The notes beneath the pieces are model-generated. The model was given only the letters and a program-made list of their open reading frames with translations. It was not told where the DNA came from and made no database searches. Below are positions 3,088 through 58,817 of a stretch of 64,000 nt of DNA, one piece after another. The stretch covers positions 1 to 64,000 of IMG/VR virus record IMGVR_UViG_3300038424_000251. The stretch is one strand, 5' to 3'. How positions within the stretch are numbered: the first letter of the stretch is position 1; the number at the start of each line of letters is the position of its first letter. The position numbers and the translations under genes were made by a program.

Positions 3088-3981
3088 TTACTTGTAAGAT
3101 TCCCTTAATAAATTTAACTTTGAATCTCTTTGTGTGATTGTTATTCCCTGTTTCTTAAAAAAGTTTTCAACAGTATTCATATCATCTTCGGTAAGCATAC
3201 CTACATCCCAATATACCATACCTGTCTTTTTACCTTCTTCTGAAAAATGAAAACGAAAACGAACATTTGACCAATTGTGTGAAAATTCAGGTTCCCCACT
3301 ATGTTCTACACCATGATATCTTGATGATGGCAACCATTTATAGACAACTTCTCCATATTTACCTATCAAACCCAATCCCCATCGCCTTTCCTCTTTAGAT
3401 TCTTTTAAGTCATGATATTTAGCAATCCATTTTTTCCTTGTTTCAGACCTATCAGATGAGTACCGATTCATCATATCTTCTGCTTGTTTTCTACTAAATC
3501 CTAAATGACCGATGAGAAAATCTTTTAGTTCTGAGGTATAAGCTCTTATTTCTTCTGGGTCACCATAATATTTGTCACCCATCATTAGTGCATCATAAGT
3601 TATCTTATTGAATAGTTTTTTATGATAATTTATTGCATGAACTAATTCGTGATAAATAACACTGTCCACATATGCAGCATATTTACTTGAAGAATTATAG
3701 CGACCATGATAGACTCCCCCTATGGTTATAGTATCATCCTTAAAATTATATTCACCATATGGTAGAGTATCTTCTGAATAATATGTGTAACGAATTCTTA
3801 TGGATAGAATTTTATTTAGAAAGACATCAATTAAATCGTTCATAGAAAGACCAAACATTAAAAGTTGTTTAGAATCATATTCTTTTGGGAATGTTTTCTG
3901 CATATAAGTTCGCAAAGGTTCTCTAAATCTTTCCAAATCTCCAAAAAGATTTTCTAATAACAATATTTTTAATTTAATCAT
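3088..3981 (-). CDS. Leader + HExxH zincin-like domain + shared C-terminal domain
   Basis: MIKLKILLLE; YHELVHAINY with downstream YYGDPEEIRAY; the C-terminal module after DLKE resembles the ends of 5322..7064 and 27977..29086. Confidence 0.6.
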   Translation of the reverse strand: MIKLKILLLENLFGDLERFREPLRTYMQKTFPKEYDSKQLLMFGLSMNDLIDVFLNKILSIRIRYTYYSEDTLPYGEYNFKDDTITIGGVYHGRYNSSSKYAAYVDSVIYHELVHAINYHKKLFNKITYDALMMGDKYYGDPEEIRAYTSELKDFLIGHLGFSRKQAEDMMNRYSSDRSETRKKWIAKYHDLKESKEERRWGLGLIGKYGEVVYKWLPSSRYHGVEHSGEPEFSHNWSNVRFRFHFSEEGKKTGMVYWDVGMLTEDDMNTVENFFKKQGITITQRDSKLNLLRESYK

Positions 3982-4441
3982 TTATTTTAGGCTTCTGTGC
4001 ATTACAACAACCATACTCATTCACTTTTTCTTCAAGTTGAAATAGGTCTGGATTGGATTTATTCAGAGATTGAAATAACATACAAATTGATGTTTTTTGG
4101 TCAAAAGAACGACAATTTTCACATCTAACTTGACGATTTACCAACCCTGCTTCTTTTGGTGTATATGAGGCAACTTCCTTTCCTTTTAAATTTGGTGACG
4201 GTTTACCATAGACATAGAAATTACAACTCATTTCACAAGTTACTTTAATTTTTCCAAGAATGGAACATGTCAATCCATCTTCACCTGTCCACATTCTACA
4301 TGTAGCGCATTGAGCAAACTTTTCCTTTGGACCTTTTGGTTCTAAATATATAAAAACTTCTCTTGTAAGTTTGTTTTTTTGTTGTTTTACTTCGGAAAAT
4401 ACTTCCAATATCAACTTTTTTATATCATTTTTATTCATCAT
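3974..4441 (-). CDS. Cys-rich protein with two HiPIP-like CxxC...C...C units
   Basis: QCATCRMW..CSILG..SCNFY and RCENCRSF..CMLF..YGCCNA; leader IKKLILEVFSE. Confidence 0.45.
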   Translation of the reverse strand: MMNKNDIKKLILEVFSEVKQQKNKLTREVFIYLEPKGPKEKFAQCATCRMWTGEDGLTCSILGKIKVTCEMSCNFYVYGKPSPNLKGKEVASYTPKEAGLVNRQVRCENCRSFDQKTSICMLFQSLNKSNPDLFQLEEKVNEYGCCNAQKPKIND

Positions 4442-5310
4442 AATTGTACAAAGAAATAGTGAACATCTTCATCTAAATCATAGGCCCAAACTATAAAGTG
4501 TCTAGTATAAGGAGATATATTTCTAGCAAATTCAAATTGATGCCTATCTATTTTTTTTCTTAAAAAATCTGGAACATCGCATCTTGATAAAAATAAATGT
4601 TTATTAACTATTTGTTTTTGACTATTAGGAATATCTTTTGGATCACCAACAAGATGTTCCATTTCTGTGGCATCCGATGCTATATAGTTTCTAAATGATG
4701 GGTCATTAAGACCTGTTTTACAATTTCCTACATAACCATACCTTTTCCCACCTTCTGTTAATACAGTTTCATTATTTTCTAATCTAAAATAAGATTTACC
4801 GCCTTGTATTGGAGAGTAACAAATTTCTCTGATTGAAACTTTTAATTTCAATCCTTCTTTTATATGAGAAAATTTTCCTTTTTGGACATAAGCTAATGTT
4901 AAATGTGGGTTATATTCCGGGTAATCATTTTCATTCAGATAAATTCCTGAAAGTTCGTTTAATTTTTTTAAAACTGGACTGTTTACTTTAAACATTGCTA
5001 CATCATATTGGGGCGATGAAACAAATTTATCTAATCCTGTAAGTTCAACAACAAAAGGTTTTTGTCCTTTAAGAAGTTGACGAACTTCCAATTCATTTAA
5101 ATCCTTCAAAAATCCATAACGAATAGTGACATGACTTTCCGTTTCTCTGCCATATTCCCCGTTTTCTACATATAAATCATTGTTATTGATTAGTTGTTTA
5201 CTAAATTTTAAAATAGAATCAGATGATTCTTTTGGAATCATAGCCATCAAACAACCTTTTTTAGCCGTTGCGTCTCTATTTTCATTTACCATTTCTTTTA
5301 GATTTATCAT
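4438..5310 (-). CDS. 2H phosphoesterase (T4 gp57B/Acb1-like) plus C-terminal module
   Basis: Two HxT motifs, SHVTIRYG and YNPHLTLAYV; leader MINLKEMVNE; second module begins after VLTE. Confidence 0.75.
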   Translation of the reverse strand: MINLKEMVNENRDATAKKGCLMAMIPKESSDSILKFSKQLINNNDLYVENGEYGRETESHVTIRYGFLKDLNELEVRQLLKGQKPFVVELTGLDKFVSSPQYDVAMFKVNSPVLKKLNELSGIYLNENDYPEYNPHLTLAYVQKGKFSHIKEGLKLKVSIREICYSPIQGGKSYFRLENNETVLTEGGKRYGYVGNCKTGLNDPSFRNYIASDATEMEHLVGDPKDIPNSQKQIVNKHLFLSRCDVPDFLRKKIDRHQFEFARNISPYTRHFIVWAYDLDEDVHYFFVQL

Positions 5311-5321
5311 AATTTTTATTA

Positions 5322-7064
5322 TTATATATGTCTAACATACGTTTTATAATCATTAAGACCTATATGTTGAGGTTTATATATTCCTTTTTTTACTAACCAA
5401 TCTTCTGCTTTATGTCTATCTTCGTCAGTTGGTGGAAATTCATTCCACAAAATTGTATTTTTTGGGGTTTCTACAAAATATCTCCATCTTGTTCCTAATG
5501 ATGTGGAACCTATTCTCCCATGTGGTAATTCAGAATGATCTACTGCCATAACATCAGGAACCATTTCATCATAAGCTTCTATATTTCCATGATAAACTAC
5601 TCCTATGTAACCACGCCTTTTATTTATATCTTTTGCTTGTTCGTATGGACTCATTATTTCACTCATAGGCTTCTTAATATTACCAAAAATCAATTTATAT
5701 AATTCTTTAACATACTGAATAAATTTTGGTTTATCCAATTCGTAAATTCTTTTAAGTTTTTTTCGAGTATCGGAATGTGCCCAATATAACATAGCTACAC
5801 TATGAGGATGAATTGATTGATGGCCAGCAATATCATCTATCAAAGCTCTGAATCCTTCTTTTTTATTTGTAGGCCAAAATTTGCTAATTATAATTTCAAT
5901 ATTATTTTTATAATCATAAAGATTGGTTTTGAATTCTATATCTCTTAATTCATGTTCTATTCTATTAAATTTGTCTCCCGGTTCTTTAACAGTTCCAAAA
6001 ACATCTACACCTCTAATAGATGGATTTCTAAACCATCTTAATGATTTTTTGGATAATCCATATTTTTTAGGAAATTTTTTACGAAATTTTTTAAGAGTAT
6101 GTCCTAAAATATCTTGCAATAAATGTCTAACTTCATGTTTAACGTCGCGTAGTTTTCTTTCCATTGATGTGTTAAATTGTTCAATTAATTCTTCTACACA
6201 AAATGTTATATAAATAGCATTTTTTCCTGAGTCATAATAATCAGTACCTCCTAATGTTTTAGGGAGGGAATTATATTCTTCGTATGTTTCTACTGCTTTA
6301 AAATAAATCCAAAATGTTTTAAAATAACCTTCTCCTTCAATACTTGGTGTTCTGTAAAAGAACATATTTTGTTTAATTTTTATTGGAAATGCCATAATAA
6401 CCATCTCACCATTAGGAGATTTAAAAGGTTTAAGAGTTTCTCCTGATTTTATTTCTTGATATTTATTACCCACAATTTTATATGGATGGGCTAATGTTCC
6501 AAAAGACCTTGCCACATACGATTGAAGCATATCAGGAGATTTAGTTTGATACTTCTTTGATTTAAGGAAGGCTTCTATAATATAACCAGCAGCAGATTTG
6601 GTGATATCTATTACTTGTTTTTCAATTTCTAATGGAATCTCAAATGCTTCATTTAATTTTTTTATTTCAGGTCTTCTAAACATCGTAGGTCCAAAAAAAC
6701 TTGAAAGACTATAATCTTTTTTTCTTCCTCTATTATGTATGAATCCTAACGATTTATAAAATTTATCTAATTTCTTTTTGTACCGTTTTTCTGCTTCAGG
6801 AGAAAGAGTAATAATTAATCCGTGTTTATCAGCAAATGATTTAATGGCTTCTATAACTTTTCTTCCTATTCCTTGTTTACGAAACTCTTTCTTTATTTTT
6901 ATATCACGTAGATGAAATATATCTTGCCTGTAGCTTATATTAAAAAATAAACTTTCTAATTGAGGATACTGATGGATTAAGGACTGACGAAAATCTTCTG
7001 TCTCTTTATCAAGGTCAGTCTTATCTCCAAATCCTTCTATTATTAATGGTTTGAGTTTTATCAT
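5322..7064 (-). CDS. Multidomain: leader + GNAT + HExxH zincin-like + shared C-terminal domain
   Basis: MIKLKPLIIE; FRKQGIG...KFYKSLGF (GNAT motifs); KHEVRHLLQD; C-terminal VDHS..RWRY..NTILW. Confidence 0.65.
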   Translation of the reverse strand: MIKLKPLIIEGFGDKTDLDKETEDFRQSLIHQYPQLESLFFNISYRQDIFHLRDIKIKKEFRKQGIGRKVIEAIKSFADKHGLIITLSPEAEKRYKKKLDKFYKSLGFIHNRGRKKDYSLSSFFGPTMFRRPEIKKLNEAFEIPLEIEKQVIDITKSAAGYIIEAFLKSKKYQTKSPDMLQSYVARSFGTLAHPYKIVGNKYQEIKSGETLKPFKSPNGEMVIMAFPIKIKQNMFFYRTPSIEGEGYFKTFWIYFKAVETYEEYNSLPKTLGGTDYYDSGKNAIYITFCVEELIEQFNTSMERKLRDVKHEVRHLLQDILGHTLKKFRKKFPKKYGLSKKSLRWFRNPSIRGVDVFGTVKEPGDKFNRIEHELRDIEFKTNLYDYKNNIEIIISKFWPTNKKEGFRALIDDIAGHQSIHPHSVAMLYWAHSDTRKKLKRIYELDKPKFIQYVKELYKLIFGNIKKPMSEIMSPYEQAKDINKRRGYIGVVYHGNIEAYDEMVPDVMAVDHSELPHGRIGSTSLGTRWRYFVETPKNTILWNEFPPTDEDRHKAEDWLVKKGIYKPQHIGLNDYKTYVRHI

Positions 7065-7065
7065 A

Positions 7066-7668
7066 TTATTTTTGTTTCATTCTTTCAAACCAATCATCTC
7101 CATAAATCTTTGCTAGTTTATCATATATTTTTTTGGTAAGATGAATTCCTGCATCGGTCATCTGACCTAATTTGTCTTTTCCTTGCAAAATGCGTTGCCT
7201 TTGTTTTATATGAAAAACTCCTAAATCTGAACCTATTCCCAGTCTTTGATATGGTTTTTCTACCCATACACCCACTGCTCCAAATTCATTTGCAGCAAAC
7301 CCTACAGGTTTGTCTTCTATAAATGCTACTACCGTTTGATTCATAACAGGCAAATTTTCTTGTCTCATCTCATTATCCGACATATAAACAGGTTCATTAT
7401 TTTTATCACGTAATATGTCACCATTTTTATCAAATTTTACATATTTCACCTTTTCATTTCTTTGTCTATATTCTACAGTATAAGGACCATGTTGTTGACT
7501 AGCTATTAATTTAGGATATTCACTTTTATTGCCAAGCCAAGACAAACCACCTTCTGATTCATATCGGGTATATGCGTTAGAAGGAATGTGTCCTGTATAA
7601 TGATACTTAAGAAAATCTTCTTTATCAGACTCTATGATATTCTCAATAATGTCTCTTAATTTAATCAT
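7066..7668 (-). CDS. Leader + GNAT-like acetyltransferase
   Basis: MIKLRDIIENIIE; VWVEKPYQRLGIG and MTDAG. Confidence 0.6.
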   Translation of the reverse strand: MIKLRDIIENIIESDKEDFLKYHYTGHIPSNAYTRYESEGGLSWLGNKSEYPKLIASQQHGPYTVEYRQRNEKVKYVKFDKNGDILRDKNNEPVYMSDNEMRQENLPVMNQTVVAFIEDKPVGFAANEFGAVGVWVEKPYQRLGIGSDLGVFHIKQRQRILQGKDKLGQMTDAGIHLTKKIYDKLAKIYGDDWFERMKQK

Positions 7669-7994
7669 GGTTGTCGTAATGTTTTAATAAATGCTGCACC
7701 TTCTGGTGTAGTAATTCCCCATACAATTTTCCATCGAGGGTGTTCTCTATGTAAATCCCTAATCATTGCGGTTGCTATACCTTTTCTTCTTTCTGATTCA
7801 ACCGTTTCCATTCCGTCAATGTAAATTACATTTTCATATGTGGAATAATCAATTTTTCCAACTTTAATTCCCCTTTTGTCGTATGCAATAAGAGTGCAAT
7901 AATTCTGACCTTTATAATTATCTCTACAATCGTGTGTAAATTCTAAAGGCTCTCCTTTTACATATTCTGGTATAAGGTGTTTTAATTTTATCAT
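7665..7994 (-). CDS. Leader + GNAT acetyltransferase
   Basis: MIKLKHLIPE; ERRKGIATAMI and TPEGAAF. Confidence 0.7.
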   Translation of the reverse strand: MIKLKHLIPEYVKGEPLEFTHDCRDNYKGQNYCTLIAYDKRGIKVGKIDYSTYENVIYIDGMETVESERRKGIATAMIRDLHREHPRWKIVWGITTPEGAAFIKTLRQP

Positions 7995-9442
7995 ATTCCA
8001 GCCACTTTCTTAGCAATTGCTAATGCTTCATCTTTGGTCAATCCGGGATTACTATACCATGCATCAGCTACAGCATTTATAATTTCTTTGAATAATGGAC
8101 CCGGTTTCAAACCAAGGTCTTGTAAATCATATCCTGTTATAGGCATTTTTGGTTTAAGAGGGACGGTTTTTAATTTTTCCAATCTTTGTCTGATATTAGT
8201 AATTTGATTAGGCATTGACGATGCTTCAGAATGAGAAATATTATCTGCATGAATTAAATTTAATATATTTTCTAACTGTTCTCCTATTTCATTACGAAAT
8301 TTCAGTAGAGTTTTATCTTTGAATTTAACTCCAGCATCACCAGCTTGTTTTAATCTCATATGATTACGAACACCCAATTTAACTGCATCAATCAATTCTC
8401 TTGGATATTTTAATCTGTTCATTACATCTTCAACAATTTTTTCACCAGCTTCCTCATGTCCATAAAAATGAACACCTTTAGTCTCGGGGTCAACTGTTTT
8501 TGTGACAGTTTTTCCTATATCATGAAATAATGCCATTAACCGTTGAACTAGTATTGGTTCGGTTTTGCTTAATACATCAAGAGTATGTTGGAATACATCA
8601 TGTTTATGATGAATATTTTGAGCCATCTTTATTGCTGGTACTAATTCAGGAATTACAAATGGTAATAGTTCTGTAATTTTTAATAATTTAATTCCTTTGG
8701 ATGGAGAGCCAGTGATAAGAATTTTATTCAATTCGTCACGAATTCTTTCTTGGGAAATATTTTTAAGTTGAGAAGCATTTTTCTTTAAGCCTCTTATCAT
8801 AAATAAAGGAAGTGTCCAATCATATTTAACCGCAAAACGAACTGCTCTTAGCATACGGAGTGGGTCATCAGTAAAGATTTTATCGGGATTTAAAGGTGTT
8901 CTTATGATACCAGCTTTAATATCATCTTTGCCTTTACCTGTTAAATCAAGAATTTCTCCTGTGGATAAATCTTTTAATAAACTATTTACAGTAAAATCTC
9001 TTCTTTCAACATCATCTTTGAGTTCGCCGCCGGTAACTATTGGTTTTCTTGAACCCGGAATATATTTTTCTTTTCTTGGCATTACAGCTTCGATATCTAT
9101 ATCACTCAAATCTATACCATCATGAACAACACCACGAAGATTAAATTTAGCTGTTCCAAATCTTGGAAAAATTACAGGGTTTGAACTTGGGTCTTCTTCA
9201 GTTTCTCCACCTTTATAAGCTCCAACTTTTTTAGTAATCCATTTAGCAAATTCAATTCCACCATTTGGAGAATTAACAAGTAAATCCAAATCTTTCGGGT
9301 CTTTACCCATAAATTCATCGCGGACATATCCACCTGCTATGAATACTTTACCTTCCCATTCTGTTTCTTGGATGGTCTTTTTAATAAAGTCTTCTACAGC
9401 TTTTTCTTTTACACCTTCTAAAATAAGTTGTTTTATGCTCAT
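7991..9442 (-). CDS. cca: CCA-adding tRNA nucleotidyltransferase / poly(A) polymerase family with HD domain
   Basis: GGYVRD, DLD, RRDFTVN, DDPLRMLRAVRF, ERIRDEL, HDIGK. The start at 9442 gives the leader MSIKQLILE; the ORF track starts at 9478. Confidence 0.85.
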   Translation of the reverse strand: MSIKQLILEGVKEKAVEDFIKKTIQETEWEGKVFIAGGYVRDEFMGKDPKDLDLLVNSPNGGIEFAKWITKKVGAYKGGETEEDPSSNPVIFPRFGTAKFNLRGVVHDGIDLSDIDIEAVMPRKEKYIPGSRKPIVTGGELKDDVERRDFTVNSLLKDLSTGEILDLTGKGKDDIKAGIIRTPLNPDKIFTDDPLRMLRAVRFAVKYDWTLPLFMIRGLKKNASQLKNISQERIRDELNKILITGSPSKGIKLLKITELLPFVIPELVPAIKMAQNIHHKHDVFQHTLDVLSKTEPILVQRLMALFHDIGKTVTKTVDPETKGVHFYGHEEAGEKIVEDVMNRLKYPRELIDAVKLGVRNHMRLKQAGDAGVKFKDKTLLKFRNEIGEQLENILNLIHADNISHSEASSMPNQITNIRQRLEKLKTVPLKPKMPITGYDLQDLGLKPGPLFKEIINAVADAWYSNPGLTKDEALAIAKKVAGI

Positions 9443-9481
9443 TAAAATATAATTTTTTATTATACCATTATTTTTCATATT

Positions 9482-10033
9482 TTACAATAAAAATCTATTA
9501 AAGAACGCTTCATTTCTACCAGTCAATTTTTTTCCAGCAGAACTTCTAATATACTCTTTTTTTGCTGTATTCCAATTATTTCTCAATACTGCATCCGTAA
9601 ATTTTGGAAATTTTTCAAGACCGCCTAAACTGAAAGAAAAATCCATCAACATTTCCTCTTGTTTTTTGGATAACATAATATTTACATTATATGTTTTTTT
9701 GATATAATTGCGCATTCTTTGTTTTGCTATTTGTAAATCTTGAATAAGAATTTTTTCAGCAGTTTTTTGGTCTATACCATTTTTGAAATTGATAATTTCG
9801 TCATCTTCCAATTTATGACCATAAGCTATGTTCCATCCGGCTATATCTTTGTAAGGAAACCACAATTTTTTTTGCTTATCAAATCCAGCATATATTGAAT
9901 TTTCAACGGTTTTAATATATTTTATGAAATCGGGAGAAAATTCCTGATGCTGAATATGAATAGCAGGTGGTTGTGTTGCTGGTGACAAAGCTTCAATCAT
10001 AAATTCTTCAATAATTTCCCTTAGTTTAATCAT
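9482..10033 (-). CDS. Leader + phage lysozyme-like muramidase
   Basis: MIKLREIIEE; IKTVE...YKDIAGWNIAYGHKL...AEKILIQDL...LMDFSFSLG..L.KFPKF (GH24-like). Confidence 0.7.
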   Translation of the reverse strand: MIKLREIIEEFMIEALSPATQPPAIHIQHQEFSPDFIKYIKTVENSIYAGFDKQKKLWFPYKDIAGWNIAYGHKLEDDEIINFKNGIDQKTAEKILIQDLQIAKQRMRNYIKKTYNVNIMLSKKQEEMLMDFSFSLGGLEKFPKFTDAVLRNNWNTAKKEYIRSSAGKKLTGRNEAFFNRFLL

Positions 10034-10083
10034 ATCTATAAATAGGTGTGACTTTAGATGAAATATTCATATTTATAAGAGAT

Positions 10084-11295
10084 ATGAACGATGTACTACA
10101 ACCTTTAACGAATCCAACAACATTAGTTGACCAAGACCGAGTAAGATGGCCGGGAAGTGGCTCATCGGTTGTTGGAAGAACTCCATTTGGTTTTTACGAC
10201 AGTGATACTTCATTTCAAGTTGATGCACCATCAGCTGCTGTATGGGCAGCTTACCGTCTTGGTTATCCCATCGTTGATATTGAAATGCTTGATGTAAATT
10301 TTTATGCGGCTTTTGAAGAAGCTGTTAACGAATATTCTGCTCAGGTAAATCAATGGAATATACGCAACTATATGCAGGTATTTCAAGGACAAAAAGTTAC
10401 TGATTTGGGTAATCTTACAGGAAGAGCAGTTACAGGAACACCGTTACCTTACATAATTGAGCTTTCTAAAGAATATGGAAGAGAAGTTGGTGTTGGTGGT
10501 TATGCTGATTGGAAGAAGGGGTTTATTGTTACAAAACCTATGAAGCAGGTTTATGATTTACAAGAATTGTGGGGAGATAAAGTTGAAGATTGTAATAGAA
10601 TTGAAGTTATGAGAGTTTTTCATGATTTTCCACCGGCTTTTGCTCGTATTTATGACCCATTCTCTATGACGGGAATGAGTTATTCTAATGTATTAAATGA
10701 ATTGGGGTTTGGTGCATACTCTCCAGCAGTTCAGTTCTTGATGACTCCAATTTTTGAAGATTTACTTCGTGGTCAGGCTATTCAGTTTAATGATATGGTT
10801 CGTAAATCTGCTTTTTCTTTCGAGTTAACAAATAATAAACTGAGATTGTTTCCTATTCCAACATATGGATTTAAAGTATATTTTCATTATATGGTTCGCA
10901 ATGATAGATTAAAGGGAGAATTTGCTAACGCTCCAAATTATACAGGTAGTTATGTTGCAGATTATGCTAACATTCCTTATAATAATATAACATATAATAC
11001 AATTAATTCTGTTGGGAGACAGTGGGTTCGTAAGTATTTTCTGGCTCTTTGCAAGGAGCTACTTGGATGTATTCGTCAAAAATATCAAACACTTCCTATT
11101 CCGGGTGGTGATGTTACTTTGGATGGTGCAGAGTTGCGTAATGAAGCTCAACAAGAGAAAACAGACTTGATAACACAACTAAGAGAGTCTCTTGATGCAG
11201 CAAGTCAAAAATCACAAACTGAAAATCAAGCTTTGCAAGCTGAACAAATGCAAGAAACTCTAAAACGAGTTCCATTATTCATTTACATTGGATAA
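10084..11295 (+). CDS. Neck protein (T4 gp13-like)
   Basis: RLGYPIVDIE, EEAVNEYS, WVRKYFLALCKELLG..R.KY..PGGDVTLDG; true ATG placed after TATTTATA. Confidence 0.7.
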   Translation: MNDVLQPLTNPTTLVDQDRVRWPGSGSSVVGRTPFGFYDSDTSFQVDAPSAAVWAAYRLGYPIVDIEMLDVNFYAAFEEAVNEYSAQVNQWNIRNYMQVFQGQKVTDLGNLTGRAVTGTPLPYIIELSKEYGREVGVGGYADWKKGFIVTKPMKQVYDLQELWGDKVEDCNRIEVMRVFHDFPPAFARIYDPFSMTGMSYSNVLNELGFGAYSPAVQFLMTPIFEDLLRGQAIQFNDMVRKSAFSFELTNNKLRLFPIPTYGFKVYFHYMVRNDRLKGEFANAPNYTGSYVADYANIPYNNITYNTINSVGRQWVRKYFLALCKELLGCIRQKYQTLPIPGGDVTLDGAELRNEAQQEKTDLITQLRESLDAASQKSQTENQALQAEQMQETLKRVPLFIYIG

Positions 11296-11296
11296 T

Positions 11297-12465: not shown

Positions 12466-12804
12466 ATGATTAAGTTAAAACAATTAGTAAAAGAGATAAT
12501 AGACCGACTTGTATGGAAAATTCCAGAAAATGCGCCTGTGCCAGTAGTAGATGTATTACATAAACTTGTAAAAGTATCCTTTTCCAGACATAAATCTCAC
12601 ATTGAAAAGTATATTAGGTTAGACAACCCAAAAGGTGGTTCTGAATGGATTATTACTAATCCAAACAATCCAAAAGTCACTTTAGCTTATGATACAGATA
12701 CTAATAAGTGGTGGGCTATGGCTGACCATCCTTCTTTTGGACCAAGTATAGGAATAATAAAAGATATTCAACATTTATTTCAAATAATAGATAACTGGGT
12801 GTAA
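12466..12804 (+). CDS. Hypothetical protein with MIKLKQLVKE leader
   Basis: Shared leader motif. Confidence 0.6.
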   Translation: MIKLKQLVKEIIDRLVWKIPENAPVPVVDVLHKLVKVSFSRHKSHIEKYIRLDNPKGGSEWIITNPNNPKVTLAYDTDTNKWWAMADHPSFGPSIGIIKDIQHLFQIIDNWV

Positions 12805-12806
12805 TA

Positions 12807-13199
12807 ATGATTAAATTGAAACAACTACTTTATGAAGCAATTGATGAAAATGATCTTATTGTGGTTTCAACCCCAACTAATGTTTCTATATCATATCGTA
12901 TTAGTCTTATGAAAGGTGCTACAGCTAGTATAGATAGAATAGATAATAATGAATGGTGGGTATCAAGAGTATTGGTTAGTGATGAATCTTCAAGAAGACA
13001 AGGAATTGGTTCAATTCTATTGACAAGAGCTGTTCAGGAAGTGTTAAAGCATGAACCTAATGCTAAAATAATTGTTGCACCGGGTGGATATGAAAGTAAA
13101 ACAAGACAACAAACTAGATTTTATAAGAAAAATGGGTTTATTCCAGTAAAAGGGCAACTCGGAGTTTTAATGTATAACAATCCAAATATAAGTAAATAA
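12807..13199 (+). CDS. Leader + GNAT acetyltransferase
   Basis: MIKLKQLLYE; VSRVLV...RRQGIGSILL...RFYKKNGF. Confidence 0.75.
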   Translation: MIKLKQLLYEAIDENDLIVVSTPTNVSISYRISLMKGATASIDRIDNNEWWVSRVLVSDESSRRQGIGSILLTRAVQEVLKHEPNAKIIVAPGGYESKTRQQTRFYKKNGFIPVKGQLGVLMYNNPNISK

Positions 13200-19764: not shown

Positions 19765-22700
19765 ATGCCAATTACAGAAGGTGGAACATTTAGTCCGGAC
19801 CGAAATATTGTGTCACCCGGAGTTTTCACAAGAGAAAATGACGTGTCAGGTGTAGCAGCAGGAGTTGCTAATATTGGTGGTGCCATTGTAGCCCCGTTTG
19901 CAAAAGGTCCAGCCTATTCGCCTGTAATTTTAACGGATGCAAATACGTTAGCTAATGAATTTGGAAACCCTGATGGAATTTATTATGGTCCATATACTGC
20001 TGCTCAATATTTACAAGAGCAAGGAATTGTAACCATTTGTAGAGTTGGTGGATTGACAGGATATCAGCAAAATTATCCATTTGCTATATGGGCTGTCAAA
20101 GGTCAATATACAAGAAGTAGTTCATTTGGTGCATTAAATAGTGGTAGTTCTTATGTTTATTTTTATGGTAGTGCATCAAATCAATACAGTGAAAGTATTA
20201 GTTGGGCATCACCTACAAGTAAATCCATGACAATTAATACTGCTAGTGTTACCATCACTTTTGTTGGTGGTGCTGCAGATGATATTACTCTTAGCCCAAC
20301 TGCAAATAGTGGTAGTTTGCTATATTATGGACAAACTATTACTTTGGGAACGGCCACTTTAATTAATGCTACGGCTAGTGTTTCACAATCACAATTTTCA
20401 TCGTCAATTGCTGCTGGAACATTTTCAGCATCAATCGTTGGTCCTGTTCCAATCAGTTTTCCAAATGCAAGTTATCAATTTCAAAGTTTAGCTTTGATTA
20501 GTGCTTCATTGAGTGTTAATTTGGGTACTTGTGGATTCCCATTAATTTTACTTAGTGGTGTGATTACTGGTGCTTTTGGTCAATATGTTGGTTTTACTTC
20601 TGCTGGTTCAGCATCGTTTAATCCATGTATCCTACCAAACGGTGCATGGACAAGTCAATCAAATGCTGATATGAGATTACTTGCTGTATTAGCAGATACG
20701 CAAGCAGGTGGTATTCAAAATCTTGTAGCGCCGGGATTCTTGGGTTCCTCATTAAGTTCGACTAACCCAATTACTCCAAGTAATCCTTCAACAACTATAC
20801 CATTGGATTTCAATCTTACTCTCATGAATAGTAACAGTACAACGCCTTACGGAGTGTACCAATTTTCATTGAATAGCGAAGACCCAAGTTATATTATTAA
20901 CGTTTTTGGTAATGACCCAACTGCTGGTAATCCGGTCAAGCAAGTTGCTGGTCAGAAAATTGAAGCGGCTTATTTGTATTCAATTTATGAGGATGTTATT
21001 GCCGATGTGGTAGCTTCAAGTAGTTATTGGGCTATATATGGTTCGGCTCTTCCATCAGGTTCACAAACGGGTCAATCACTTAATTTTACAGACCAATATT
21101 CTCGTAATTTGAATGAAGGTGATAGTGTATTTTCAATTCAAGAAGCAATCACTCCTTGGGTTCTTTCTCAAGCTATTGCTCCTTATCAGAGTGGCTCTGC
21201 TCCACATCGTTATGAATTGTTTAGAATTCATACTATAGCTGATGGAACTTATACCAATACTCAATTCAAAGTTCAAATAAGTAATATTAAGTTAGCAGGC
21301 ACCGTTGCTGGTAGTAATTGGGGTTCATTCACTCTTACACTTCGCAAATATAGTGATACTGATAAGCGTCCTATTATTGTTGAACAATACAACAATTTGA
21401 ATCTTAATCCTGATGATGCTAACTTTATTGCTCGTGTAATTGGTGACATGTATAGTTATATCAATTTTAACGGTAAAGTAATAGAATTTGGAACTTACTC
21501 AAATAATAGTAATAATATTAGGGTAGAAATGTCAACTAACAATTATCCAGTAAGTGCTATTCCTTATGGATTTGAAGCATATATTACACCAACAAATGGA
21601 GAAATGGGTTTCTGGACTCCTAGAATGAAATATACAAAAGCTTCTGTTTATGGATTAAGTCCGGGCAAATATCCATCAGGAATTACTTTCAATGATGCTC
21701 CTACAGGTGCGGATGCTGAATTATTCAATCTATATCCACAGCTTTCGTCAGGCGTCGGCGCTGCTGATGATAATTTACAATATTTTGCTCCGATTCCATC
21801 ATTTGCCTCAAGCGGTGGAAGTTATAGTAGTATTGGAAGAAATACTATATTTGCTTTAGACCTTGATTATGAGTTGTATGGAGTTAGTACAGGTTTTTTC
21901 CTTAGTGGAAGTAATATTGTTCCTACAGTTTATGACCCTGTAAATGAACCAACTTATATTAAAATGAGAAACTTTGTATTTGGGTTCCAAGGTGGATTTG
22001 ATGGTCAAAGCCCATCAATTCCAATTAACGTAGGTGGAGATATTATCGCAGGAAATACTCAAGGGTTGGACTGCACGAATGTAAATTCTGCTGGTTCAAT
22101 TGGCTATGCTCAAGCAATTGCAGCTCTTGGTAATGCTGACCAATATGATATTAATCTTATTGTGACACCGGGTATAGTATATGAAGAACACCCATACGTC
22201 ACTAATTTGGTTGTTGATATGTGTGAAGCTCGTGGTGATTGCTTCTATATTATGGACACGTATGTTGACAGTGGTAATCCATCAACAGGTCAAATTACTC
22301 AGGTTGTATCTTATGCTTCCGAATTTGATACAAACTATGCTGCTACTTATTATCCTTGGATTAAAATCCTTGACACGTATAATAATCTTATAGTCACCGT
22401 TCCACCATCTGTTATATTACCATCAGTTTATGCAGCCAGCGACAAAGTAGCCGCAGAATGGTTTGCACCTGCTGGATTAAATCGTGGTGGTATTTCAATC
22501 GCTACACAAGTAACGGATAGAACTACACACGAAGAACGTGATACCCTATATGAAGGTAAAGTCAATCCGATTGCATCATTTCCGGGTTCAGGTATTGTTG
22601 TATGGGGTCAAAAGACTTTGCAAAACGCGAATACAGCATTGAATAGAATTAATGTTCGCAGGTTATTAATTAATATCAAGAAATTCTTTGCTTCAACAGC

Positions 22701-22962
22701 TAAATATTTGGTATTTGAACAAAATGTAGCTTCTACACGCAACAAATTTTTGAGTATTGTTAATCCATATTTGGAATCAGTTCAACAAAGGTCAGGTCTA
22801 TATGCTTTCTTTGTGAAAATGGATGACGCTAATAATACACCTGATATTATTGATCGAAATATCCTTTATGGGCAAATTTATCTACAACCAACCAAGACGG
22901 CAGAATTTATTGTTCTTGATTTCAATATTTTGCCGACAGGTGCAAGTTTTCCTAACGCTTAA
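19765..22962 (+). CDS. Contractile tail sheath protein
   Basis: VSPGVFTREND, YYPWIKI, WFAPAGLNRG, RDTLYEGKVNPI, WGQKTLQ, RINVRRLL, QPTKTAEFIVLDF. Confidence 0.95.
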   Translation: MPITEGGTFSPDRNIVSPGVFTRENDVSGVAAGVANIGGAIVAPFAKGPAYSPVILTDANTLANEFGNPDGIYYGPYTAAQYLQEQGIVTICRVGGLTGYQQNYPFAIWAVKGQYTRSSSFGALNSGSSYVYFYGSASNQYSESISWASPTSKSMTINTASVTITFVGGAADDITLSPTANSGSLLYYGQTITLGTATLINATASVSQSQFSSSIAAGTFSASIVGPVPISFPNASYQFQSLALISASLSVNLGTCGFPLILLSGVITGAFGQYVGFTSAGSASFNPCILPNGAWTSQSNADMRLLAVLADTQAGGIQNLVAPGFLGSSLSSTNPITPSNPSTTIPLDFNLTLMNSNSTTPYGVYQFSLNSEDPSYIINVFGNDPTAGNPVKQVAGQKIEAAYLYSIYEDVIADVVASSSYWAIYGSALPSGSQTGQSLNFTDQYSRNLNEGDSVFSIQEAITPWVLSQAIAPYQSGSAPHRYELFRIHTIADGTYTNTQFKVQISNIKLAGTVAGSNWGSFTLTLRKYSDTDKRPIIVEQYNNLNLNPDDANFIARVIGDMYSYINFNGKVIEFGTYSNNSNNIRVEMSTNNYPVSAIPYGFEAYITPTNGEMGFWTPRMKYTKASVYGLSPGKYPSGITFNDAPTGADAELFNLYPQLSSGVGAADDNLQYFAPIPSFASSGGSYSSIGRNTIFALDLDYELYGVSTGFFLSGSNIVPTVYDPVNEPTYIKMRNFVFGFQGGFDGQSPSIPINVGGDIIAGNTQGLDCTNVNSAGSIGYAQAIAALGNADQYDINLIVTPGIVYEEHPYVTNLVVDMCEARGDCFYIMDTYVDSGNPSTGQITQVVSYASEFDTNYAATYYPWIKILDTYNNLIVTVPPSVILPSVYAASDKVAAEWFAPAGLNRGGISIATQVTDRTTHEERDTLYEGKVNPIASFPGSGIVVWGQKTLQNANTALNRINVRRLLINIKKFFASTAKYLVFEQNVASTRNKFLSIVNPYLESVQQRSGLYAFFVKMDDANNTPDIIDRNILYGQIYLQPTKTAEFIVLDFNILPTGASFPNA

Positions 22963-23635: not shown

Positions 23636-23639
23636 TGGT

Positions 23640-23972
23640 ATGATTAAGTTAAAAGACATGATACCTAAAAAGTATTTTTATCATATTACACCAAGGAAAA
23701 ATATTCCAAATATGAAAATACATGGTATAGTTCCCAAACCAGATAATCCTGCTCCTTTTTGTGATAAAGTAGTTTGTTTATTTGATAATAGGACATCAAT
23801 AGAAACTGCATTTACGAGTTGGTTGTTAGGTAAATTTAATAAAAATGAGCCAATGGTTCTTTTAACTATAGACCCTACGGGGTTAGACATACATTCATCT
23901 GAAATAGCATATGAATTTAGAGTTTTTAAACCCATACCTTGGAAAAATGTTGTAAAAGTTGAAAATATATGA
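23640..23972 (+). CDS. Leader + ADP-ribosyltransferase-like fold
   Basis: MIKLKDMIP; FYHITPRKNI.NM..HGI.P, VCLF, LLTID, YEFRV..PIP pattern of small ART/Tpt1-like domains. Confidence 0.55.
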   Translation: MIKLKDMIPKKYFYHITPRKNIPNMKIHGIVPKPDNPAPFCDKVVCLFDNRTSIETAFTSWLLGKFNKNEPMVLLTIDPTGLDIHSSEIAYEFRVFKPIPWKNVVKVENI

Positions 23973-25497: not shown

Positions 25498-25626
25498 GTC
25501 TCCTTATAAATTTATTTCAAAACATCCTTTTCAAAGTATTATTATTGCCTAATTTTTGGATCTCTTGTACACTATTATAGTTATTTATAGTACATTTTTA
25601 AATTGTACTTTAATAAAAGCAGTACA

Positions 25627-25655
25627 AGTATGTGCTTAATATAATGACTTGTCAA
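25627..25655 (-). promoter_or_regulatory. Sigma70-type promoter pointing antisense
   Basis: Minus strand TTGACA (25655-25650), 17 nt, CATACT (25632-25627). Confidence 0.45.
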
Positions 25656-25682
25656 GTTATTTTAATTTATATTTATATTAAT

Positions 25683-29132: not shown

Positions 29133-29624
29133 ATGGCAGACTTACTAAATTCAAATGAGATTTTTTGGACAGCTTATGAACCAAAAACTCAGAATCGTTT
29201 TATTTTGTATATTGATGGTATTCCATCTTTTTTACTAAGAAAGACAGATAGACCACACATCGTACAAGAACGCAAAGCATTAGACCACATCAACCTTCAG
29301 AGATATTACAAGGGTAAATCTATTTGGCAGGAAGTTACGATGGAATTGTATGATGCAATCGTTCCTTCTGGTGCACAAGCAGTTATGGAATGGATTCGTT
29401 TGTCTCACGAATCTGTAACAGGTCGTGATGGTTATCAAGATTTCTATAAGAAAAATATTACCGTAAACGTCCTTGGTCCTGTAGGTGACAAGGTGGAAGA
29501 ATGGACGATGGTTGGTGCTTGGGTTTCTGATGGCAATTTTCAAGCAGTTGATTGGACTAATACGGGTGACCCATTATCAATTACTATTACAGTTAGTTAC
29601 GATTACGCTATTTTACAGTATTAA
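29133..29624 (+). CDS. Tail tube protein (T4 gp19-like)
   Basis: EPKTQNRF, W.EVTMELYD, AQAVMEW, YKKNI, GPVGDKVEEW...GAW, YDYA. Confidence 0.85.
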   Translation: MADLLNSNEIFWTAYEPKTQNRFILYIDGIPSFLLRKTDRPHIVQERKALDHINLQRYYKGKSIWQEVTMELYDAIVPSGAQAVMEWIRLSHESVTGRDGYQDFYKKNITVNVLGPVGDKVEEWTMVGAWVSDGNFQAVDWTNTGDPLSITITVSYDYAILQY

Positions 29625-48039: not shown

Positions 48040-48771
48040 ATGGAAAATATTTTTTGTGGTGATTGTTTTGATTATATGGTAAAATTAGATGCTAATTCTA
48101 TCGATATGATTTTGTGTGACCTTCCATTTTCCATTACCGATTGTAAGTGGGACCAAGAAATTGACTTAAATAGATTGTGGGTAGAATACAAAAGAATTCT
48201 AAAACTTCGTGGAGTAGTAGCATTACATTCTGTTCAACCTTTTACTACTGATTTAATTAACAGTAATAGAAAGTGGTTTAAATATAGTTATATTTGGATA
48301 AAATCTCAAGCAGCAAATTTTCAGTTGGCAAAGAAAATGCCTCTTAAAAAACATGAAGATGTTTGTATTTTTTATGAAGGTCGGCCTACTTACAACCCCC
48401 AAATGTGGAAAGGAAAATTGAAAGGAAAGAGAATAGGTAAAACAGTATATCAAAATAGAAAATCTGATATGTATTTATCTTCCAAACCTGCCAATTTATC
48501 TATTGTTAAAAATGACATTTACTATCCTACAACTATATTGAACTATCCTAATGTGTCCAGAAATAAATCAATCCATCCTACTCAAAAACCTGTTGAGTTA
48601 GAAGAATTTTTAATAAAGACATATACAAACGAAGGTGATACGGTTTTAGATAATTGTGCAGGAAGTGGAACTACAGGTATAGCAGCTAGAAATTGTAATA
48701 GAAAATTTATCTTAATTGAGAAGGAAGAAAAGTACTACGATAAAATAATAGGAAGATTAAATCAAAAATAA
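48040..48771 (+). CDS. N4-cytosine/N6-adenine DNA methyltransferase (beta class)
   Basis: DMILCDLPF, HPTQKPV, VLDNCAGSGTTG. Confidence 0.9.
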   Translation: MENIFCGDCFDYMVKLDANSIDMILCDLPFSITDCKWDQEIDLNRLWVEYKRILKLRGVVALHSVQPFTTDLINSNRKWFKYSYIWIKSQAANFQLAKKMPLKKHEDVCIFYEGRPTYNPQMWKGKLKGKRIGKTVYQNRKSDMYLSSKPANLSIVKNDIYYPTTILNYPNVSRNKSIHPTQKPVELEEFLIKTYTNEGDTVLDNCAGSGTTGIAARNCNRKFILIEKEEKYYDKIIGRLNQK

Positions 48772-56422: not shown

Positions 56423-57199
56423 ATGCTGGAAGAAAAATATTTTGATGCTAAAAGAGTTATCATCAAGAAAATAGATAAGGCTGTAGCTGAAGAAATAATT
56501 ATAAAATATCATTATTCACATAAATGGTCTTTATGTCAGATTGCGTATGGAATTTTTTATATTACCGACAAGCAATGTCAATTTTTTAATGCTGTAGAGG
56601 AAACTCTTATTGGTTGTATTGTATATGGTCAGCCCGTTGGTCGTTCTGCTGCCGAATCTATTTCAAAGTTAGTTGGTGTTTACGAAGTATTTGAACTTAC
56701 TAGATTATTCATTCATGATGGATACGGTAAAAATATAGAAAGTTATTCAATATCAAAATCTCTAGAACTTGTTAAAAGAGATTTCCCACATATTAAAGCA
56801 ATAATTTCTTATGCAGATGGTGAGCAGGGACATAAAGGAACTATTTATCAGGCTTGTAATTTTCATTATCAAGGTAATTCTTCTTTAGCTTTGATGCCCA
56901 ATTACTCTGTTTCTTTAGTTGGACCTCCTTATAAATGGATTCACTCAAGAACTATTTCATCAACATATGGTTCGCATAACGTTGAATATTTGAAAAAAAA
57001 GATAGGTCATACATTCTGGAGAAAAAAAGAATCTTCAAAACACAGATATGTTTACTTACTTGGAAATAAAAAAGAAAAAAGAAAAATACTGTTAAATCTT
57101 AAACATCCATTTCAATCTTACCCAAAGAGTACAAATCATACCGATGAAATTGAACAAATCATAGTAAATCCTCTTACAGAAAATCAATTCTTTGGATGA
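56423..57199 (+). CDS. Mom-like DNA modification protein (GNAT fold)
   Basis: IIKYHYSH, GCIVYG, ELTRL, ESYSISKSL, IISYAD..QGHKGTIYQACNF.YQG, KHRYVY. Confidence 0.75.
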   Translation: MLEEKYFDAKRVIIKKIDKAVAEEIIIKYHYSHKWSLCQIAYGIFYITDKQCQFFNAVEETLIGCIVYGQPVGRSAAESISKLVGVYEVFELTRLFIHDGYGKNIESYSISKSLELVKRDFPHIKAIISYADGEQGHKGTIYQACNFHYQGNSSLALMPNYSVSLVGPPYKWIHSRTISSTYGSHNVEYLKKKIGHTFWRKKESSKHRYVYLLGNKKEKRKILLNLKHPFQSYPKSTNHTDEIEQIIVNPLTENQFFG

Positions 57200-57221
57200 A
57201 ATATTGATATTTATAAGAGAT

Positions 57222-58817
57222 ATGATAATGTCTTTTATTACAGATATGGGTGAGAAACTCAAATTGGTTGACCAAAAAACTGGTAATATTATTGAATTGC
57301 CTCAACATGCTTATTGGGATGATTTAGGTAAAGGTAAACCAGAAGTTAAGGAAACAGGTGACAATTTAGAACATCTTAAAAAAAAATATAATGTACCGGA
57401 CAATCGCATAATTAGAGCAAAGGAACTTACACAAAGTATGAAAGAAGCTGTATCTAGTGAAAATATCAATATTATTGTTGACAGAGAATCGGAACTTGGT
57501 TATAGAGTTGTAAATGCTGTTTATATTAGAGGCGGATTTGAAAAAGGAATTGAAAAAATAAAGAAATTATCCAGTTATAAAGGAGTAGTTCAGTTTGTAA
57601 ATCCAGAAACAGGAGAAACGGTAAAAGGGCCTAAATATGATACAGCAACACAAATTATGAAGGGAAGAAAAATTAGTGATGTATTACCCCGTGGAATAAA
57701 ACAACAACCACCAACTGAACCAACACAATATGAACCAAGAGATAGAGTTGATGAATTAGAATGGGGAAAAAAACCACAACAATATAAAAGTCAAATTATA
57801 GTTAGCAAAAAATGGTTAGGAAAATATAAAGTTACTGCTTATGATGAAAATGGTAATATAGCAGGAAATGGAACAGAACAATATGAATTTGCGTCACCTG
57901 ACCATGTTGTAGTAACAGTCAGATATTTACAGAAAAAACATCCTGAATGGTCCGTTATAGATTTAACTAAAGAAATATTTATGAATGAAATCACTAAATT
58001 TAGAAACATAATCAGAGAGTGTATCTCTGAAATAAAAAAAGAGAACGACCCAAGAACACTTCTTAAAGAGTCACTTCGTAATGTAGTTAAAGAAGTTTTA
58101 AAAGAAATAGCGACTGTTTCTAAACCAGAACCAACCGAAGAGGAAAAAACAGACACTTCCAAGGGATATTTCAAAAAATTGAATCAACGTGTGGATAAAA
58201 CTAATGATAAATTACAGGCTGAACTTGAAACGATTGTTCATGGTATTGACCCTACTTGGGAAGTCTATTGGGATGACCACAATCAGTTGATTGTTCGTGC
58301 TCATAATCTTTTATATGTTAGAATTGTGCCAAAATTTGAAAATAATTATGATATTGATGCTATGGTGAAATTGGTTGATAGAGTCCGTGCTATAGCTCAA
58401 ACATGGGACCAAGTTAAGGCATTTGTCAAAGCTAACTTTAATGATTTGAAAAATCAGACTATTCCTGATAAATTACATAAAAAATCTGTTGATAACTATG
58501 AAGATAGAGAAGTAATTAAAAAGGATGCTGGCCCGGAGAAAGCTAAAGTTAATTTTAGATATCAAGACCCAAAACATAGTAGTGTTAAAGATACTAAGAA
58601 AGATGATAAAAATTATAATGAACCTCAAACCAAGAGGGCAGAAGATATGCCTGACCAACCAATGAAGCAGGTGACAGAGCCCGGTAAAGACCCGGAATCT
58701 AAAAATAAAAACATTACAAAAACTCCTCAGGTTAAACCACCAAAACACAAACTTGACAAAAAATTGAGAGTGAAAGACAAGAAAACTTCCAAATTTACTT
58801 TTAAGAAGACAACCTAA
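57222..58817 (+). CDS. Modular protein with internal IIRECISE / VVKEVLKE motifs
   Basis: Late motif upstream; several x-x-E junctions; Lys/Pro-rich tail. Confidence 0.55.
   Translation: MIMSFITDMGEKLKLVDQKTGNIIELPQHAYWDDLGKGKPEVKETGDNLEHLKKKYNVPDNRIIRAKELTQSMKEAVSSENINIIVDRESELGYRVVNAVYIRGGFEKGIEKIKKLSSYKGVVQFVNPETGETVKGPKYDTATQIMKGRKISDVLPRGIKQQPPTEPTQYEPRDRVDELEWGKKPQQYKSQIIVSKKWLGKYKVTAYDENGNIAGNGTEQYEFASPDHVVVTVRYLQKKHPEWSVIDLTKEIFMNEITKFRNIIRECISEIKKENDPRTLLKESLRNVVKEVLKEIATVSKPEPTEEEKTDTSKGYFKKLNQRVDKTNDKLQAELETIVHGIDPTWEVYWDDHNQLIVRAHNLLYVRIVPKFENNYDIDAMVKLVDRVRAIAQTWDQVKAFVKANFNDLKNQTIPDKLHKKSVDNYEDREVIKKDAGPEKAKVNFRYQDPKHSSVKDTKKDDKNYNEPQTKRAEDMPDQPMKQVTEPGKDPESKNKNITKTPQVKPPKHKLDKKLRVKDKKTSKFTFKKTT

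Follow-up and report, generated by a model that had tools for sequence, protein, structure and literature searches.

The first 64 kb of the virus record IMGVR_UViG_3300038424_000251 (365,299 bp), hereafter the window, raise the question of whether a phage can load several effectors into its head under one tag and cut them apart there. The DNA is that of a T4-related jumbo myovirus from metagenomes, present in peat and soil samples. About 19 of the 59 open reading frames (ORFs) in the window start with a short leader, the ten-residue M-I-K-L-K-x-h-h-x-E or a variant of it, where h is a hydrophobic residue, and several encode two or three modules joined at a shorter motif, h-x-E. The initial annotation had proposed that the head protease cuts at these joints and so releases independent effectors from a single tagged precursor, and the hydrophobic-x-Glu tetrapeptides it quoted are all present in ORFs 5322, 3088, 4438, 23969, 27977, and 49849. 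From homologous sequences and structure models, we consider it on balance probable that the h-x-E joints in tagged fusions are cut by a T4-type head protease, giving several injected effectors per tag.

Among the tagged ORFs of the window, 10 have M-I-K-L-[KR]-x-h-h-x-E and 9 have looser or longer variants. The leader heads GNAT, 2H, lysozyme, zincin-like, and CCA-enzyme proteins as well as proteins without a family. Its codons differ synonymously among the copies, which places the selection on the peptide. When IMG/VR was scanned with a degenerate DNA pattern, at least 120 loci were found, in which the leader heads more than 100 different proteins. In the listed matches, 143 of 146 complete leaders open real ORFs of at least 60 amino acids, with almost no open frame upstream, and the leader ORFs often form tandem arrays on unrelated proteins. 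Many of these loci are kin of the window phage, with neck, sheath, tube, hub, polymerase, SSB, and UvsX genes in common. The extended motif [ILMF][KR]-x-h-h-x-E was counted 25 times in the window proteins and 2.1 ± 1.4 times in shuffled sequences. About 17 of the 25 copies are N-terminal. The remainder are internal, in ORFs 26858, 30949, 49849, and 57222, with one at the C terminus of ORF 23051; the internal full-helix copies that had been noted in ORFs 26858, 30949, and 57222 are thus confirmed. PHROGs gave no match for ten leader-bearing ORFs, and a literature search with the leader string returned nothing relevant.

The T4 internal proteins ipII and ipIII begin with M-K-T-Y-Q-E-F-I-A-E. The first 10 residues of the T4 targeting sequence are enough for packaging, residues 4 and 7 serving for targeting and residues 8 and 10 for processing, and the T4 protease gp21 cuts after L/I-X-E (PMC9026906). 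The conserved positions of our leader are 4, 7, 8, and 10, the same four as the T4 determinants, which is a match in conservation. We take the leader to be the form that the T4 capsid targeting sequence has in this lineage; judging from the alignment of positions, the peptide alone differs.

ORF 5322, with LIIE at residues 7 to 10, joins a GNAT domain, a zincin-like module, and a shared C-terminal domain, here called SH. A search with its product gave 1,514 homologues with shuffled architectures, which were read from 150 of the matches. In these listed homologues, the GNAT, zincin-like, and SH parts each occur alone, N-terminal, internal, or C-terminal. Standalone SH proteins run from the leader glutamate into I-x-S-P-Y, and ORF 5322 runs from P-M-S-E into I-M-S-P-Y. 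Likewise, standalone zincin-like proteins run from the leader glutamate into x-F-E-[IL]-P, and ORF 5322 from K-L-N-E into A-F-E-I-P. An SH profile built from the ORF 5322 homologues matched ORF 27977 (E value of 7e-8) and ORF 3088 (8e-7) in the window proteome, which bears out a domain shared by the three proteins; it did not match the C terminus of ORF 4438. The SH domain went undetected by BLAST within the window, pairwise BLASTP was weak (E values of about 0.002 to 0.003), and no known family or fold was matched. The label zincin-like was given solely for the HExxH..Q motif conserved across homologues (HEVRH at residues 310 to 314), and neither this part of ORF 5322 nor the whole of ORF 3088 matched a Pfam peptidase or, by sequence, a PDB entry. 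GNAT domains were assigned by Pfam in ORFs 5322, 7066, 7665, and 12807.

ORF 4438, with MVNE at residues 7 to 10, has an Acb1-like 2H domain (nucleotides 4777 to 5280, minus strand) followed by a second module. The domain was identified by Pfam (PF23474) and by Foldseek (7t26, template modeling score of 0.73 by target); the N-terminal domain of the model matches LigT and Acb1, a nuclease acting against the cyclic-oligonucleotide-based antiphage signaling system (CBASS). Of the module names in the initial annotation, GNAT and 2H thus have Pfam matches, nucleotidyltransferase (NTase) has a weak one, and zincin has its motif. ORF 4438 has 73 homologues. The 2H module is usually standalone, with 177 to 180 amino acids and the variant leader M-I-N-L-K, and is elsewhere fused to at least three different C-terminal modules. 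In two proteins (P0172 and P0177), a complete internal leader joins zincin-like and 2H modules.

We modeled the products of both ORFs with AlphaFold. The ORF 4438 model has a mean predicted local distance difference test score (pLDDT) of 87 and falls below 50 in two segments only, residues 1 to 15 and 180 to 187, the second of which contains VLTE. The ORF 5322 model was made from one alignment (A5), and its mean pLDDT is low (64), the alignment of the zincin-like part being shallow and that part poorly modeled; the GNAT (residues 13 to 112) and SH (470 to 580) domains are confident. Here pLDDT is below 50 at residues 1 to 12, 136 to 143, which include KLNE, and 458 to 465. Residues 466 to 468 lie in a coil (461 to 468), and E469 opens a two-residue strand. 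The claim that the sites lie in disordered linkers therefore held in the two proteins modeled, where E139 and E469 of ORF 5322 and E186 of ORF 4438 all fall between folded modules.

To compare joints among homologues, we counted back from anchors that are independent of the motif, taking P1 as the position aligned with the leader glutamate and P3 as the one two residues earlier (I, L, V, M, or F in leaders and joints). Two MAFFT alignments (A2 and A4) were left out; module fragments were misplaced at the wrong end in them because leaders attract one another. At the SH joints, P1 is glutamate and P3 hydrophobic in 11 of 11 proteins, and the targeting positions P4 and P7 are hydrophobic in 1 and 2 of the 11, against 5 of 5 each in the N-terminal leaders of the SH family. 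GNAT-zincin joints have L/M-x-E in 4 of 4 cases (two further anchor matches were unrelated proteins). The joint before the C-terminal module of ORF 4438 keeps the P1 glutamate in 9 of 9 and the P3 hydrophobic residue in 8 of 9 homologues, in a linker that otherwise varies in length and sequence, and the Cys-His-Asp module of ORF 23969 has [ILVF]-x-E 7 to 10 residues upstream in 7 of 7. Over these four modules, the P1 glutamate is found in all 31 listed fused proteins, at a background motif rate of 0.025 per position. Internal GNAT copies mostly keep a full or partial leader. Retention of P1 and P3 with loss of the targeting positions, before five unrelated modules, is what T4 genetics predicts for a site that is only cut.

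The composition of the tagged proteins was examined as well. In 121 distinct tagged proteins from the IMG/VR loci, [ILMV]-x-E past residue 14 has an observed-to-expected ratio of 0.95, compared with 1.26 in 812 other ORFs; the count is 269, against 359 expected at the ratio of the other ORFs (P = 4e-7). Control motifs in which D, K, or Q replaces E gave ratios of 0.96 to 1.11. In the window, the tagged set has a ratio of 0.76 and the remaining ORFs 1.17, and six single-domain cargo proteins (844 amino acids) contain two motifs in all past residue 16. Because the avoidance is limited to the glutamate motif, it is an independent sign that tagged proteins may meet a glutamate-specific protease.

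The same comparisons bear on the possibility that the joints are relics, keeping h-x-E by descent from leaders while the fused proteins are packaged and act uncut. The modules clearly arose through fusion or fission of tagged genes, near-whole leaders at some joints (P0020, P0033, and P0172) suggest recent fusion, and the motif has been lost at a few joints. Decay, however, is selective at the SH joints, as the counts above show, the same pattern stands before five unrelated modules in linkers of variable length, and the glutamate-specific avoidance elsewhere implies exposure to such a protease. We regard relics as a rather unlikely explanation.

Further fusions extend the pattern. ORF 23969, with ILTE at residues 7 to 10, has three internal h-x-E motifs, two of which are the claimed joints, and its SCSG module stands directly behind an N-terminal leader in two relatives (P0226 and P0227). 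ORF 49849 has VIKE at residues 13 to 16, VIDE at 231 to 234, and IINE at 339 to 342; a protein of 128 amino acids (P0231) is a single unit with an N-terminal helix and is 73% identical to its unit 3. ORF 3088 has LLLE at residues 7 to 10 and three h-x-E motifs past the leader, and only identical copies of it were found in IMG/VR. For ORF 27977, the Pfam match to an NTase is weak, and a standalone untagged NTase gene of 226 amino acids is present in one relative (L042). A read-through from ORF 26858 into ORF 27977, which share one frame across a single TAA followed by GTG, was considered and rejected as ordinary gene packing, because TAA is the commonest stop (44 of 59) and the NTase gene is independent in relatives. 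The prediction that modules also occur as standalone genes with their own leader came true for the GNAT, zincin-like, SH, 2H, SCSG, and zinc finger units and failed for the Cys-His-Asp module. A leader of their own is present on most of the standalone genes. Mixing and matching of domains was evident in the relatives of ORFs 5322, 4438, 23969, and 49849, in which modules are variably combined.

An embedded zincin-like peptidase might free the modules instead, acting in cis or in trans and either ahead of packaging or following injection. The module with the conserved HExxH..Q motif is present in ORFs 5322 and 3088 and in relatives such as P0172, and embedded metallopeptidases are expected to release domains under the polyvalent-protein model (PMC5512222). 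The same joint motif is nevertheless found in zincin-free fusions (ORFs 4438, 23969, and 49849 and GNAT-SH proteins), it equals the leader's own end and fits the specificity of gp21, and no Pfam metallopeptidase family was found, including that of the polyvalent-protein type. Release by such a peptidase appears quite unlikely to us.

The location of leader genes in relatives points to the head protease. Using the head protease of Microcystis phage Mel-JY01 as the query, we found an S77 protease homologue within 28 of the 120 listed leader loci, often with leader ORFs directly adjoining. The leader ORFs by the protease occupy the position of the core genes 67, 68, and 22 of T4. In these relatives, the protease belongs to PF03420 (Peptidase_S77, the gp21 family) and the neighboring capsid protein to PF07068 (Gp23). 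A scan with a protease profile gave more than 600 matches, of which the best 80 were retained. Of 77 loci retrieved by the protease alone, strict leader ORFs are present in 10, always 0.6 to 3.7 kb downstream of the protease, and variant leaders occur in many more.

These data also address the idea that the leader is some other N-terminal signal, such as a translation start context or an export or degradation tag, and that the joints are unrelated to head maturation. The start region is indeed very AT-rich with no visible Shine-Dalgarno sequence, and packaging is a step that we infer. Conservation is nonetheless at the protein level with synonymous variation, the T4 capsid targeting sequence is matched at positions 4, 7, 8, and 10, leader ORFs adjoin the S77 protease at the position of the T4 head core genes, internal copies would be useless for translation start, and an export signal would be longer and less charged. 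Such a signal is very unlikely. That h-x-E is so common that any boundary has one nearby (335 [ILMV]-x-E in the 59 window proteins, about 5.7 per protein, versus 285 ± 15 in shuffles, with 10 each in ORFs 5322 and 4438) is extremely unlikely to explain joints whose P1 glutamate lies at the residue fixed by standalone homologues.

In Mel-JY01-like contigs, a leader-tagged ADP-ribosyltransferase of 330 to 413 amino acids (PF03496) lies between the S77 protease and the capsid gene (L126, 11564 to 12703; also L019, L026, L111, L148, L149, and L152); one ORF encoding such an enzyme just downstream of the protease starts with M-I-R-L-K. By sequence, it is the counterpart of T4 Alt. The head module of Mel-JY01, the nearest cultured relative, also has a gene for ribosomal protein S21, adjoining the protease (L124, 10201 to 10428).

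We propose the following mechanism. Leader residues 4 and 7 would take the tagged protein into the prohead core, where a head protease of the gp21 family (Peptidase_S77) would cut after Glu10, reading residues 8 (P3) and 10 (P1). Several of the tagged genes are fusions whose modules occur elsewhere as tagged genes of their own, and the fused joints keep P3 and P1 of the former leader and have lost the targeting part. A single N-terminal tag could then carry the entire precursor into the prohead, where the protease could separate the modules in exposed linkers, for example, GNAT, zincin-like, and SH in ORF 5322 and the Acb1-like 2H domain and the second module in ORF 4438. The freed proteins would be ejected together with the DNA. 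Packaging, cleavage, the identity of the protease, and ejection are what we infer. The proposal as a whole is partly supported; where ORFs 5322, 4438, and 49849 and the second joint in ORF 23969 are concerned, comparative, structural, and compositional evidence supports its core well.

Several findings weigh against this mechanism. Peptidase_S77 was not found in the window by library scans of its proteins. A scan for the phage's own protease with a single protein reached Mel-JY01-like contigs only, and the window contig was not among the best 80 of the more than 600 profile matches. A walk upstream of ORF 491 led to tail-fiber-like genes and no head module, and the phage's own capsid gene likewise lies outside the window. 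As to the joints, release by the head protease agrees with four independent computational lines (the shuffling of modules, the conserved joints, the linkers, and the avoidance) and parts from the data at ELTE of ORF 23969, which is absent in the closest homologue (P0225). The Cys-His-Asp module of the same protein is standalone without a leader in two relatives, and the internal GNAT joints of three proteins (P0036, P0004, and P0032) have no motif. ORF 27977 has a joint-like site with no N-terminal tag, and its description as a tagged precursor fails. The joints share ancestry, so that the counts are not independent events, and part of the motif conservation could be structural, the motif abutting conserved module N termini. 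Within the window alone, the coincidence of motifs and boundaries is not beyond chance; it becomes significant only because homologues fix the boundaries to the residue. Several of the 10 h-x-E motifs in each of ORFs 5322 and 4438 are inside folded domains, and accessibility would have to restrict where the protease cuts. Finally, ORFs 26858, 30949, and 57222 have charged, low-complexity, or coiled-coil tails behind their leader-like helices, with no family match and no recognizable effector domain past the helix. They may be multiply cut head core proteins at least as plausibly as effector polyproteins.

The targeting sequence of T4 IPI, IPII, IPIII, and Alt is the closest to ours in several respects: a 10-residue leader on unrelated nonessential enzymes, hydrophobic residues at positions 4, 7, and 8 and glutamate at position 10, the cut motif L/I-x-E, T4-type virion genes, and, in relatives of our phage, a leader on the ADP-ribosyltransferase. 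The leader itself differs (M-K-T-Y-Q in T4, M-I-K-L-K here), and tagged genes are far more numerous here, about 19 in 64 kb. T4 internal proteins are single modules cut at the N terminus (Alt also at the C terminus), whereas many here are multimodular with internal determinants. The T4 head core proteins gp22, gp67, and gp68 are alike in that one precursor receives several L/I-x-E cuts in the prohead, and ORFs 26858, 30949, and 57222 may belong to this type. Their fragments, however, are mostly discarded scaffold peptides, while folded enzyme domains that are also encoded separately are at stake here. In phiKZ, 201phi2-1, and SPN3US, many head and ejection proteins are substrates of a protease related to gp21, which cleaves after glutamate at several sites per propeptide. 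In these phages, the motif is A/S/G-x-E with a small P3, in contrast to the hydrophobic P3 here, and the propeptides are long (111 to 254 amino acids) and are discarded; separation of one precursor into several functional modules is not described for them.

Polyvalent proteins of phages and conjugative elements, described by Iyer, Burroughs, Anand, de Souza, and Aravind in 2017, are multidomain effectors for which packaging and release by embedded metallopeptidases were proposed and which were likened to viral polyproteins (PMC5512222). As in our proteins, disparate effector domains (GNAT, Pol-beta NTase, and peptidase) stand in one polypeptide, here variably combined in relatives, delivery with the DNA and proteolytic processing are predicted, and the genes here lie among virion genes. 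For polyvalent proteins, no junction motif or targeting leader was named, whereas the proteins here are small (290 to 580 amino acids), with a T4-type leader and a defined joint motif. Our analysis adds to that model a defined leader, a joint motif matching the specificity of a head protease, and evidence of selection on the motif. Whether this amounts to a two-part capsid-loading grammar in T4-related phages, with the leader targeting a multienzyme precursor, joints of P3 and P1 alone being cut, and the prohead serving as the processing compartment, we regard as evenly balanced.

Proteins injected with phage DNA act before phage gene expression and are therefore prime counter-defense tools. 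The candidate injected set comprises an Acb1-like cyclic-nucleotide phosphoesterase, protein acetyltransferases, a nucleotidyltransferase, and a lysozyme. If carried in the capsid, the Acb1-like enzyme would be at work ahead of any phage gene expression. If the proposed processing is true, the packaged and ejected proteomes of uncultured phages and their mature protein ends could be read from sequence, and the cheap accretion of anti-defense enzymes in jumbo phages would be explained by in-frame fusion to a tagged gene. It would also connect the concept of polyvalent proteins with a definite protease and motif and offer a design principle for bringing several proteins into T4-type capsids with one tag.

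Table 1. Positions of tagged genes, joints, and virion genes in the 64-kb window (aa, amino acids; nt, nucleotides)
Feature	Position (nt)	Strand	Description
ORF 2541	2541..3068	-	Leader variant M-K-L-K-T-L-L-Q-I-I-E
ORF 3088, 297 aa	3088..3981	-	Leader, HExxH module (HELVH 111-115), DLKE 191-194 (nt 3400-3411), divergent SH
ORF 4438, 290 aa	4438..5310	-	Leader M-I-N-L-K-E-M-V-N-E, 2H/Acb1-like phosphoesterase 11-178, C-terminal module 187-290
Joint VLTE of ORF 4438, residues 183-186	4753..4764	-	In linker; predicted cut after E186
ORF 5322, 580 aa	5322..7064	-	Leader 1-10, GNAT 11-135, zincin-like 140-465, SH 470-580
Shared C-terminal SH domain of ORF 5322	5325..5657	-	No family assigned
Joint PMSE of ORF 5322, residues 466-469	5658..5669	-	Predicted cut after E469
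Joint KLNE of ORF 5322, residues 136-139	6648..6659	-	Predicted cut after E139
Leader of ORF 5322	7035..7064	-	M-I-K-L-K-P-L-I-I-E
ORF 7066, 200 aa	7066..7668	-	Leader-tagged GNAT-like protein; no h-x-E beyond residue 13
ORF 7665, 109 aa	7665..7994	-	Leader-tagged GNAT (Pfam); no h-x-E beyond leader
ORF 7991	7991..9478	-	CCA-adding/polyA polymerase with HD domain (Pfam); leader-like start at Met13 (M-S-I-K-Q-L-I-L-E)
ORF 9482, 183 aa	9482..10033	-	Leader-tagged lysozyme (Pfam); no h-x-E beyond residue 14
T4 gp13-like neck protein	10084..11295	+	PF26809; homologous to Mel-JY01 neck gene
Two leader-tagged ORFs among neck genes	12466..13199	+	112 aa, no assigned function; 130-aa GNAT (ORF 12807)
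Tail sheath	19765..22962	+	
ORF 23640	23640..23972	+	M-I-K-L-K leader with Lys at position 10 instead of Glu; no h-x-E anywhere
ORF 23969, 303 aa	23969..24880	+	Leader, Trp-rich repeat 11-69, SCSG module, Cys-His-Asp module
ELTE of ORF 23969, residues 70-73	24176-24187	+	
KIKE of ORF 23969, residues 200-203	24566-24577	+	
ORF 26858, 372 aa	26858..27976	+	N-terminal long leader; internal copies nt 27404-27445, 27518-27559
ORF 27977, 369 aa	27977..29086	+	NTase 1-231 without leader, NLNE 247-250 (nt 28715-28726), divergent SH
T4 gp19-like tail tube	29133..29624	+	
ORF 30949, 428 aa	30949..32235	+	Cytidylyltransferase-like N terminus without leader; internal helix nt 31885-31938, matrix score 17.6
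ORF 49849, 448 aa	49849..51195	-	Three units, each a leader-like helix then a zinc finger
Leader-like helices of ORF 49849	51148-51183, 50494-50529, 50170-50205	-	
ORF 57222	57222..58817	+	Internal leader-like helices nt 57984-58034, 58053-58100; true start follows conserved 30-nt motif

Some tagged or partly tagged genes have informative relatives. The product of ORF 7991 is called as 483 amino acids in other assemblies, and a homologue (in L053) has S-L-L-T-E at the equivalent joint, behind an N-terminal module of 180 amino acids. The module of ORF 2541 is fused behind 2H and a coiled coil, after V-N-E, in another protein (P0183). The product of ORF 23640 may be packaged uncut, by analogy with T4, where a change of residue 10 stops processing and not targeting.

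ORF 23051, with a NUDIX domain (Pfam), ends in a leader-like peptide, I-K-L-K-E-L-I-K-E (23594 to 23635, plus strand; matrix score, 23.3), three residues before the stop, and the next leader-tagged gene begins four bases past its end in a different frame. The peptide may represent a C-terminal propeptide, as both T4 Alt and gp21 undergo C-terminal cleavage, or the stump of a lost fusion. A homologue in L053 runs on into a cell wall hydrolase and a GNAT-like part. Other leaders were seen in more distant phages: eight tandem ORFs in a 634-kb uncultured phage (L146, LR745206.1; 2738 to 9417) all have M-K-[HY]-L-K-K-F-N-E, and GNAT homologues of further lineages begin with M-x-F-K-L-W-L-E or M-K-T-F-E-Q-F-L-T-E. 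By these sequences, lineage-specific leader variants seem widespread.

The window has a G+C content of about 32%, and other assemblies contain near-identical contigs of 364 kb and 255 kb; ORF 5322 is present at identical coordinates in the 365,299-bp record. A megablast search of 20 kb of the window against annotated phages gave no match. Among annotated phages, sheath comparison places Microcystis phage Mel-JY01 (45% identity), a 484-kb uncultured phage, and Flavobacterium phage immuto closest, and after them the broad T4 superfamily. A search for a close cultured relative having virion mass spectrometry data found none. The T4-type virion genes in the window encode a gp13-like neck protein, sheath, gp19-like tube, gp26-like hub, and a tape-measure-like protein, and the cargo blocks at 2541 to 10033 and 23051 to 32235 are interspersed among the neck, sheath, tube, and hub genes.

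A 30-nucleotide motif occurs at 10057 to 10086 and 57195 to 57224 (plus strand), with 29 of 30 positions alike and 0 occurrences expected by chance. Both copies terminate in an ATG, that of the gp13-like gene (10084) and that of ORF 57222, and the motif is probably a promoter or start-region element; its placement indicates that the ORF starts listed at 10048 and 57192 lie too far upstream. At the left end (1 to 490), independent assemblies (the IMG/VR contig and two others) end within about 500 nucleotides upstream of ORF 491. Assemblies that extend further (L137 to L142) differ, with a protein of 1,496 amino acids in some and proteins of 923, 634, and 374 amino acids in another, and this is probably a strain-variable tail fiber region. 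The ORFs at 14386 to 16989 and 17053 to 19287 (plus strand) have Ser-rich repeats (S-A-S-W-A-S-S-S-I-S-S-S-Y), related N termini, and no family match, and are probably tail fibers. The ORFs at 125 to 487 and 2007 to 2537 (plus strand) are paralogous, with 60% identity across 124 amino acids. A Mom-family protein (PF25680; E value of 1e-43) is encoded at 56423 to 57199 and an N6/N4 DNA methylase at 48040 to 48771, both on the plus strand, and the phage probably modifies its own DNA.

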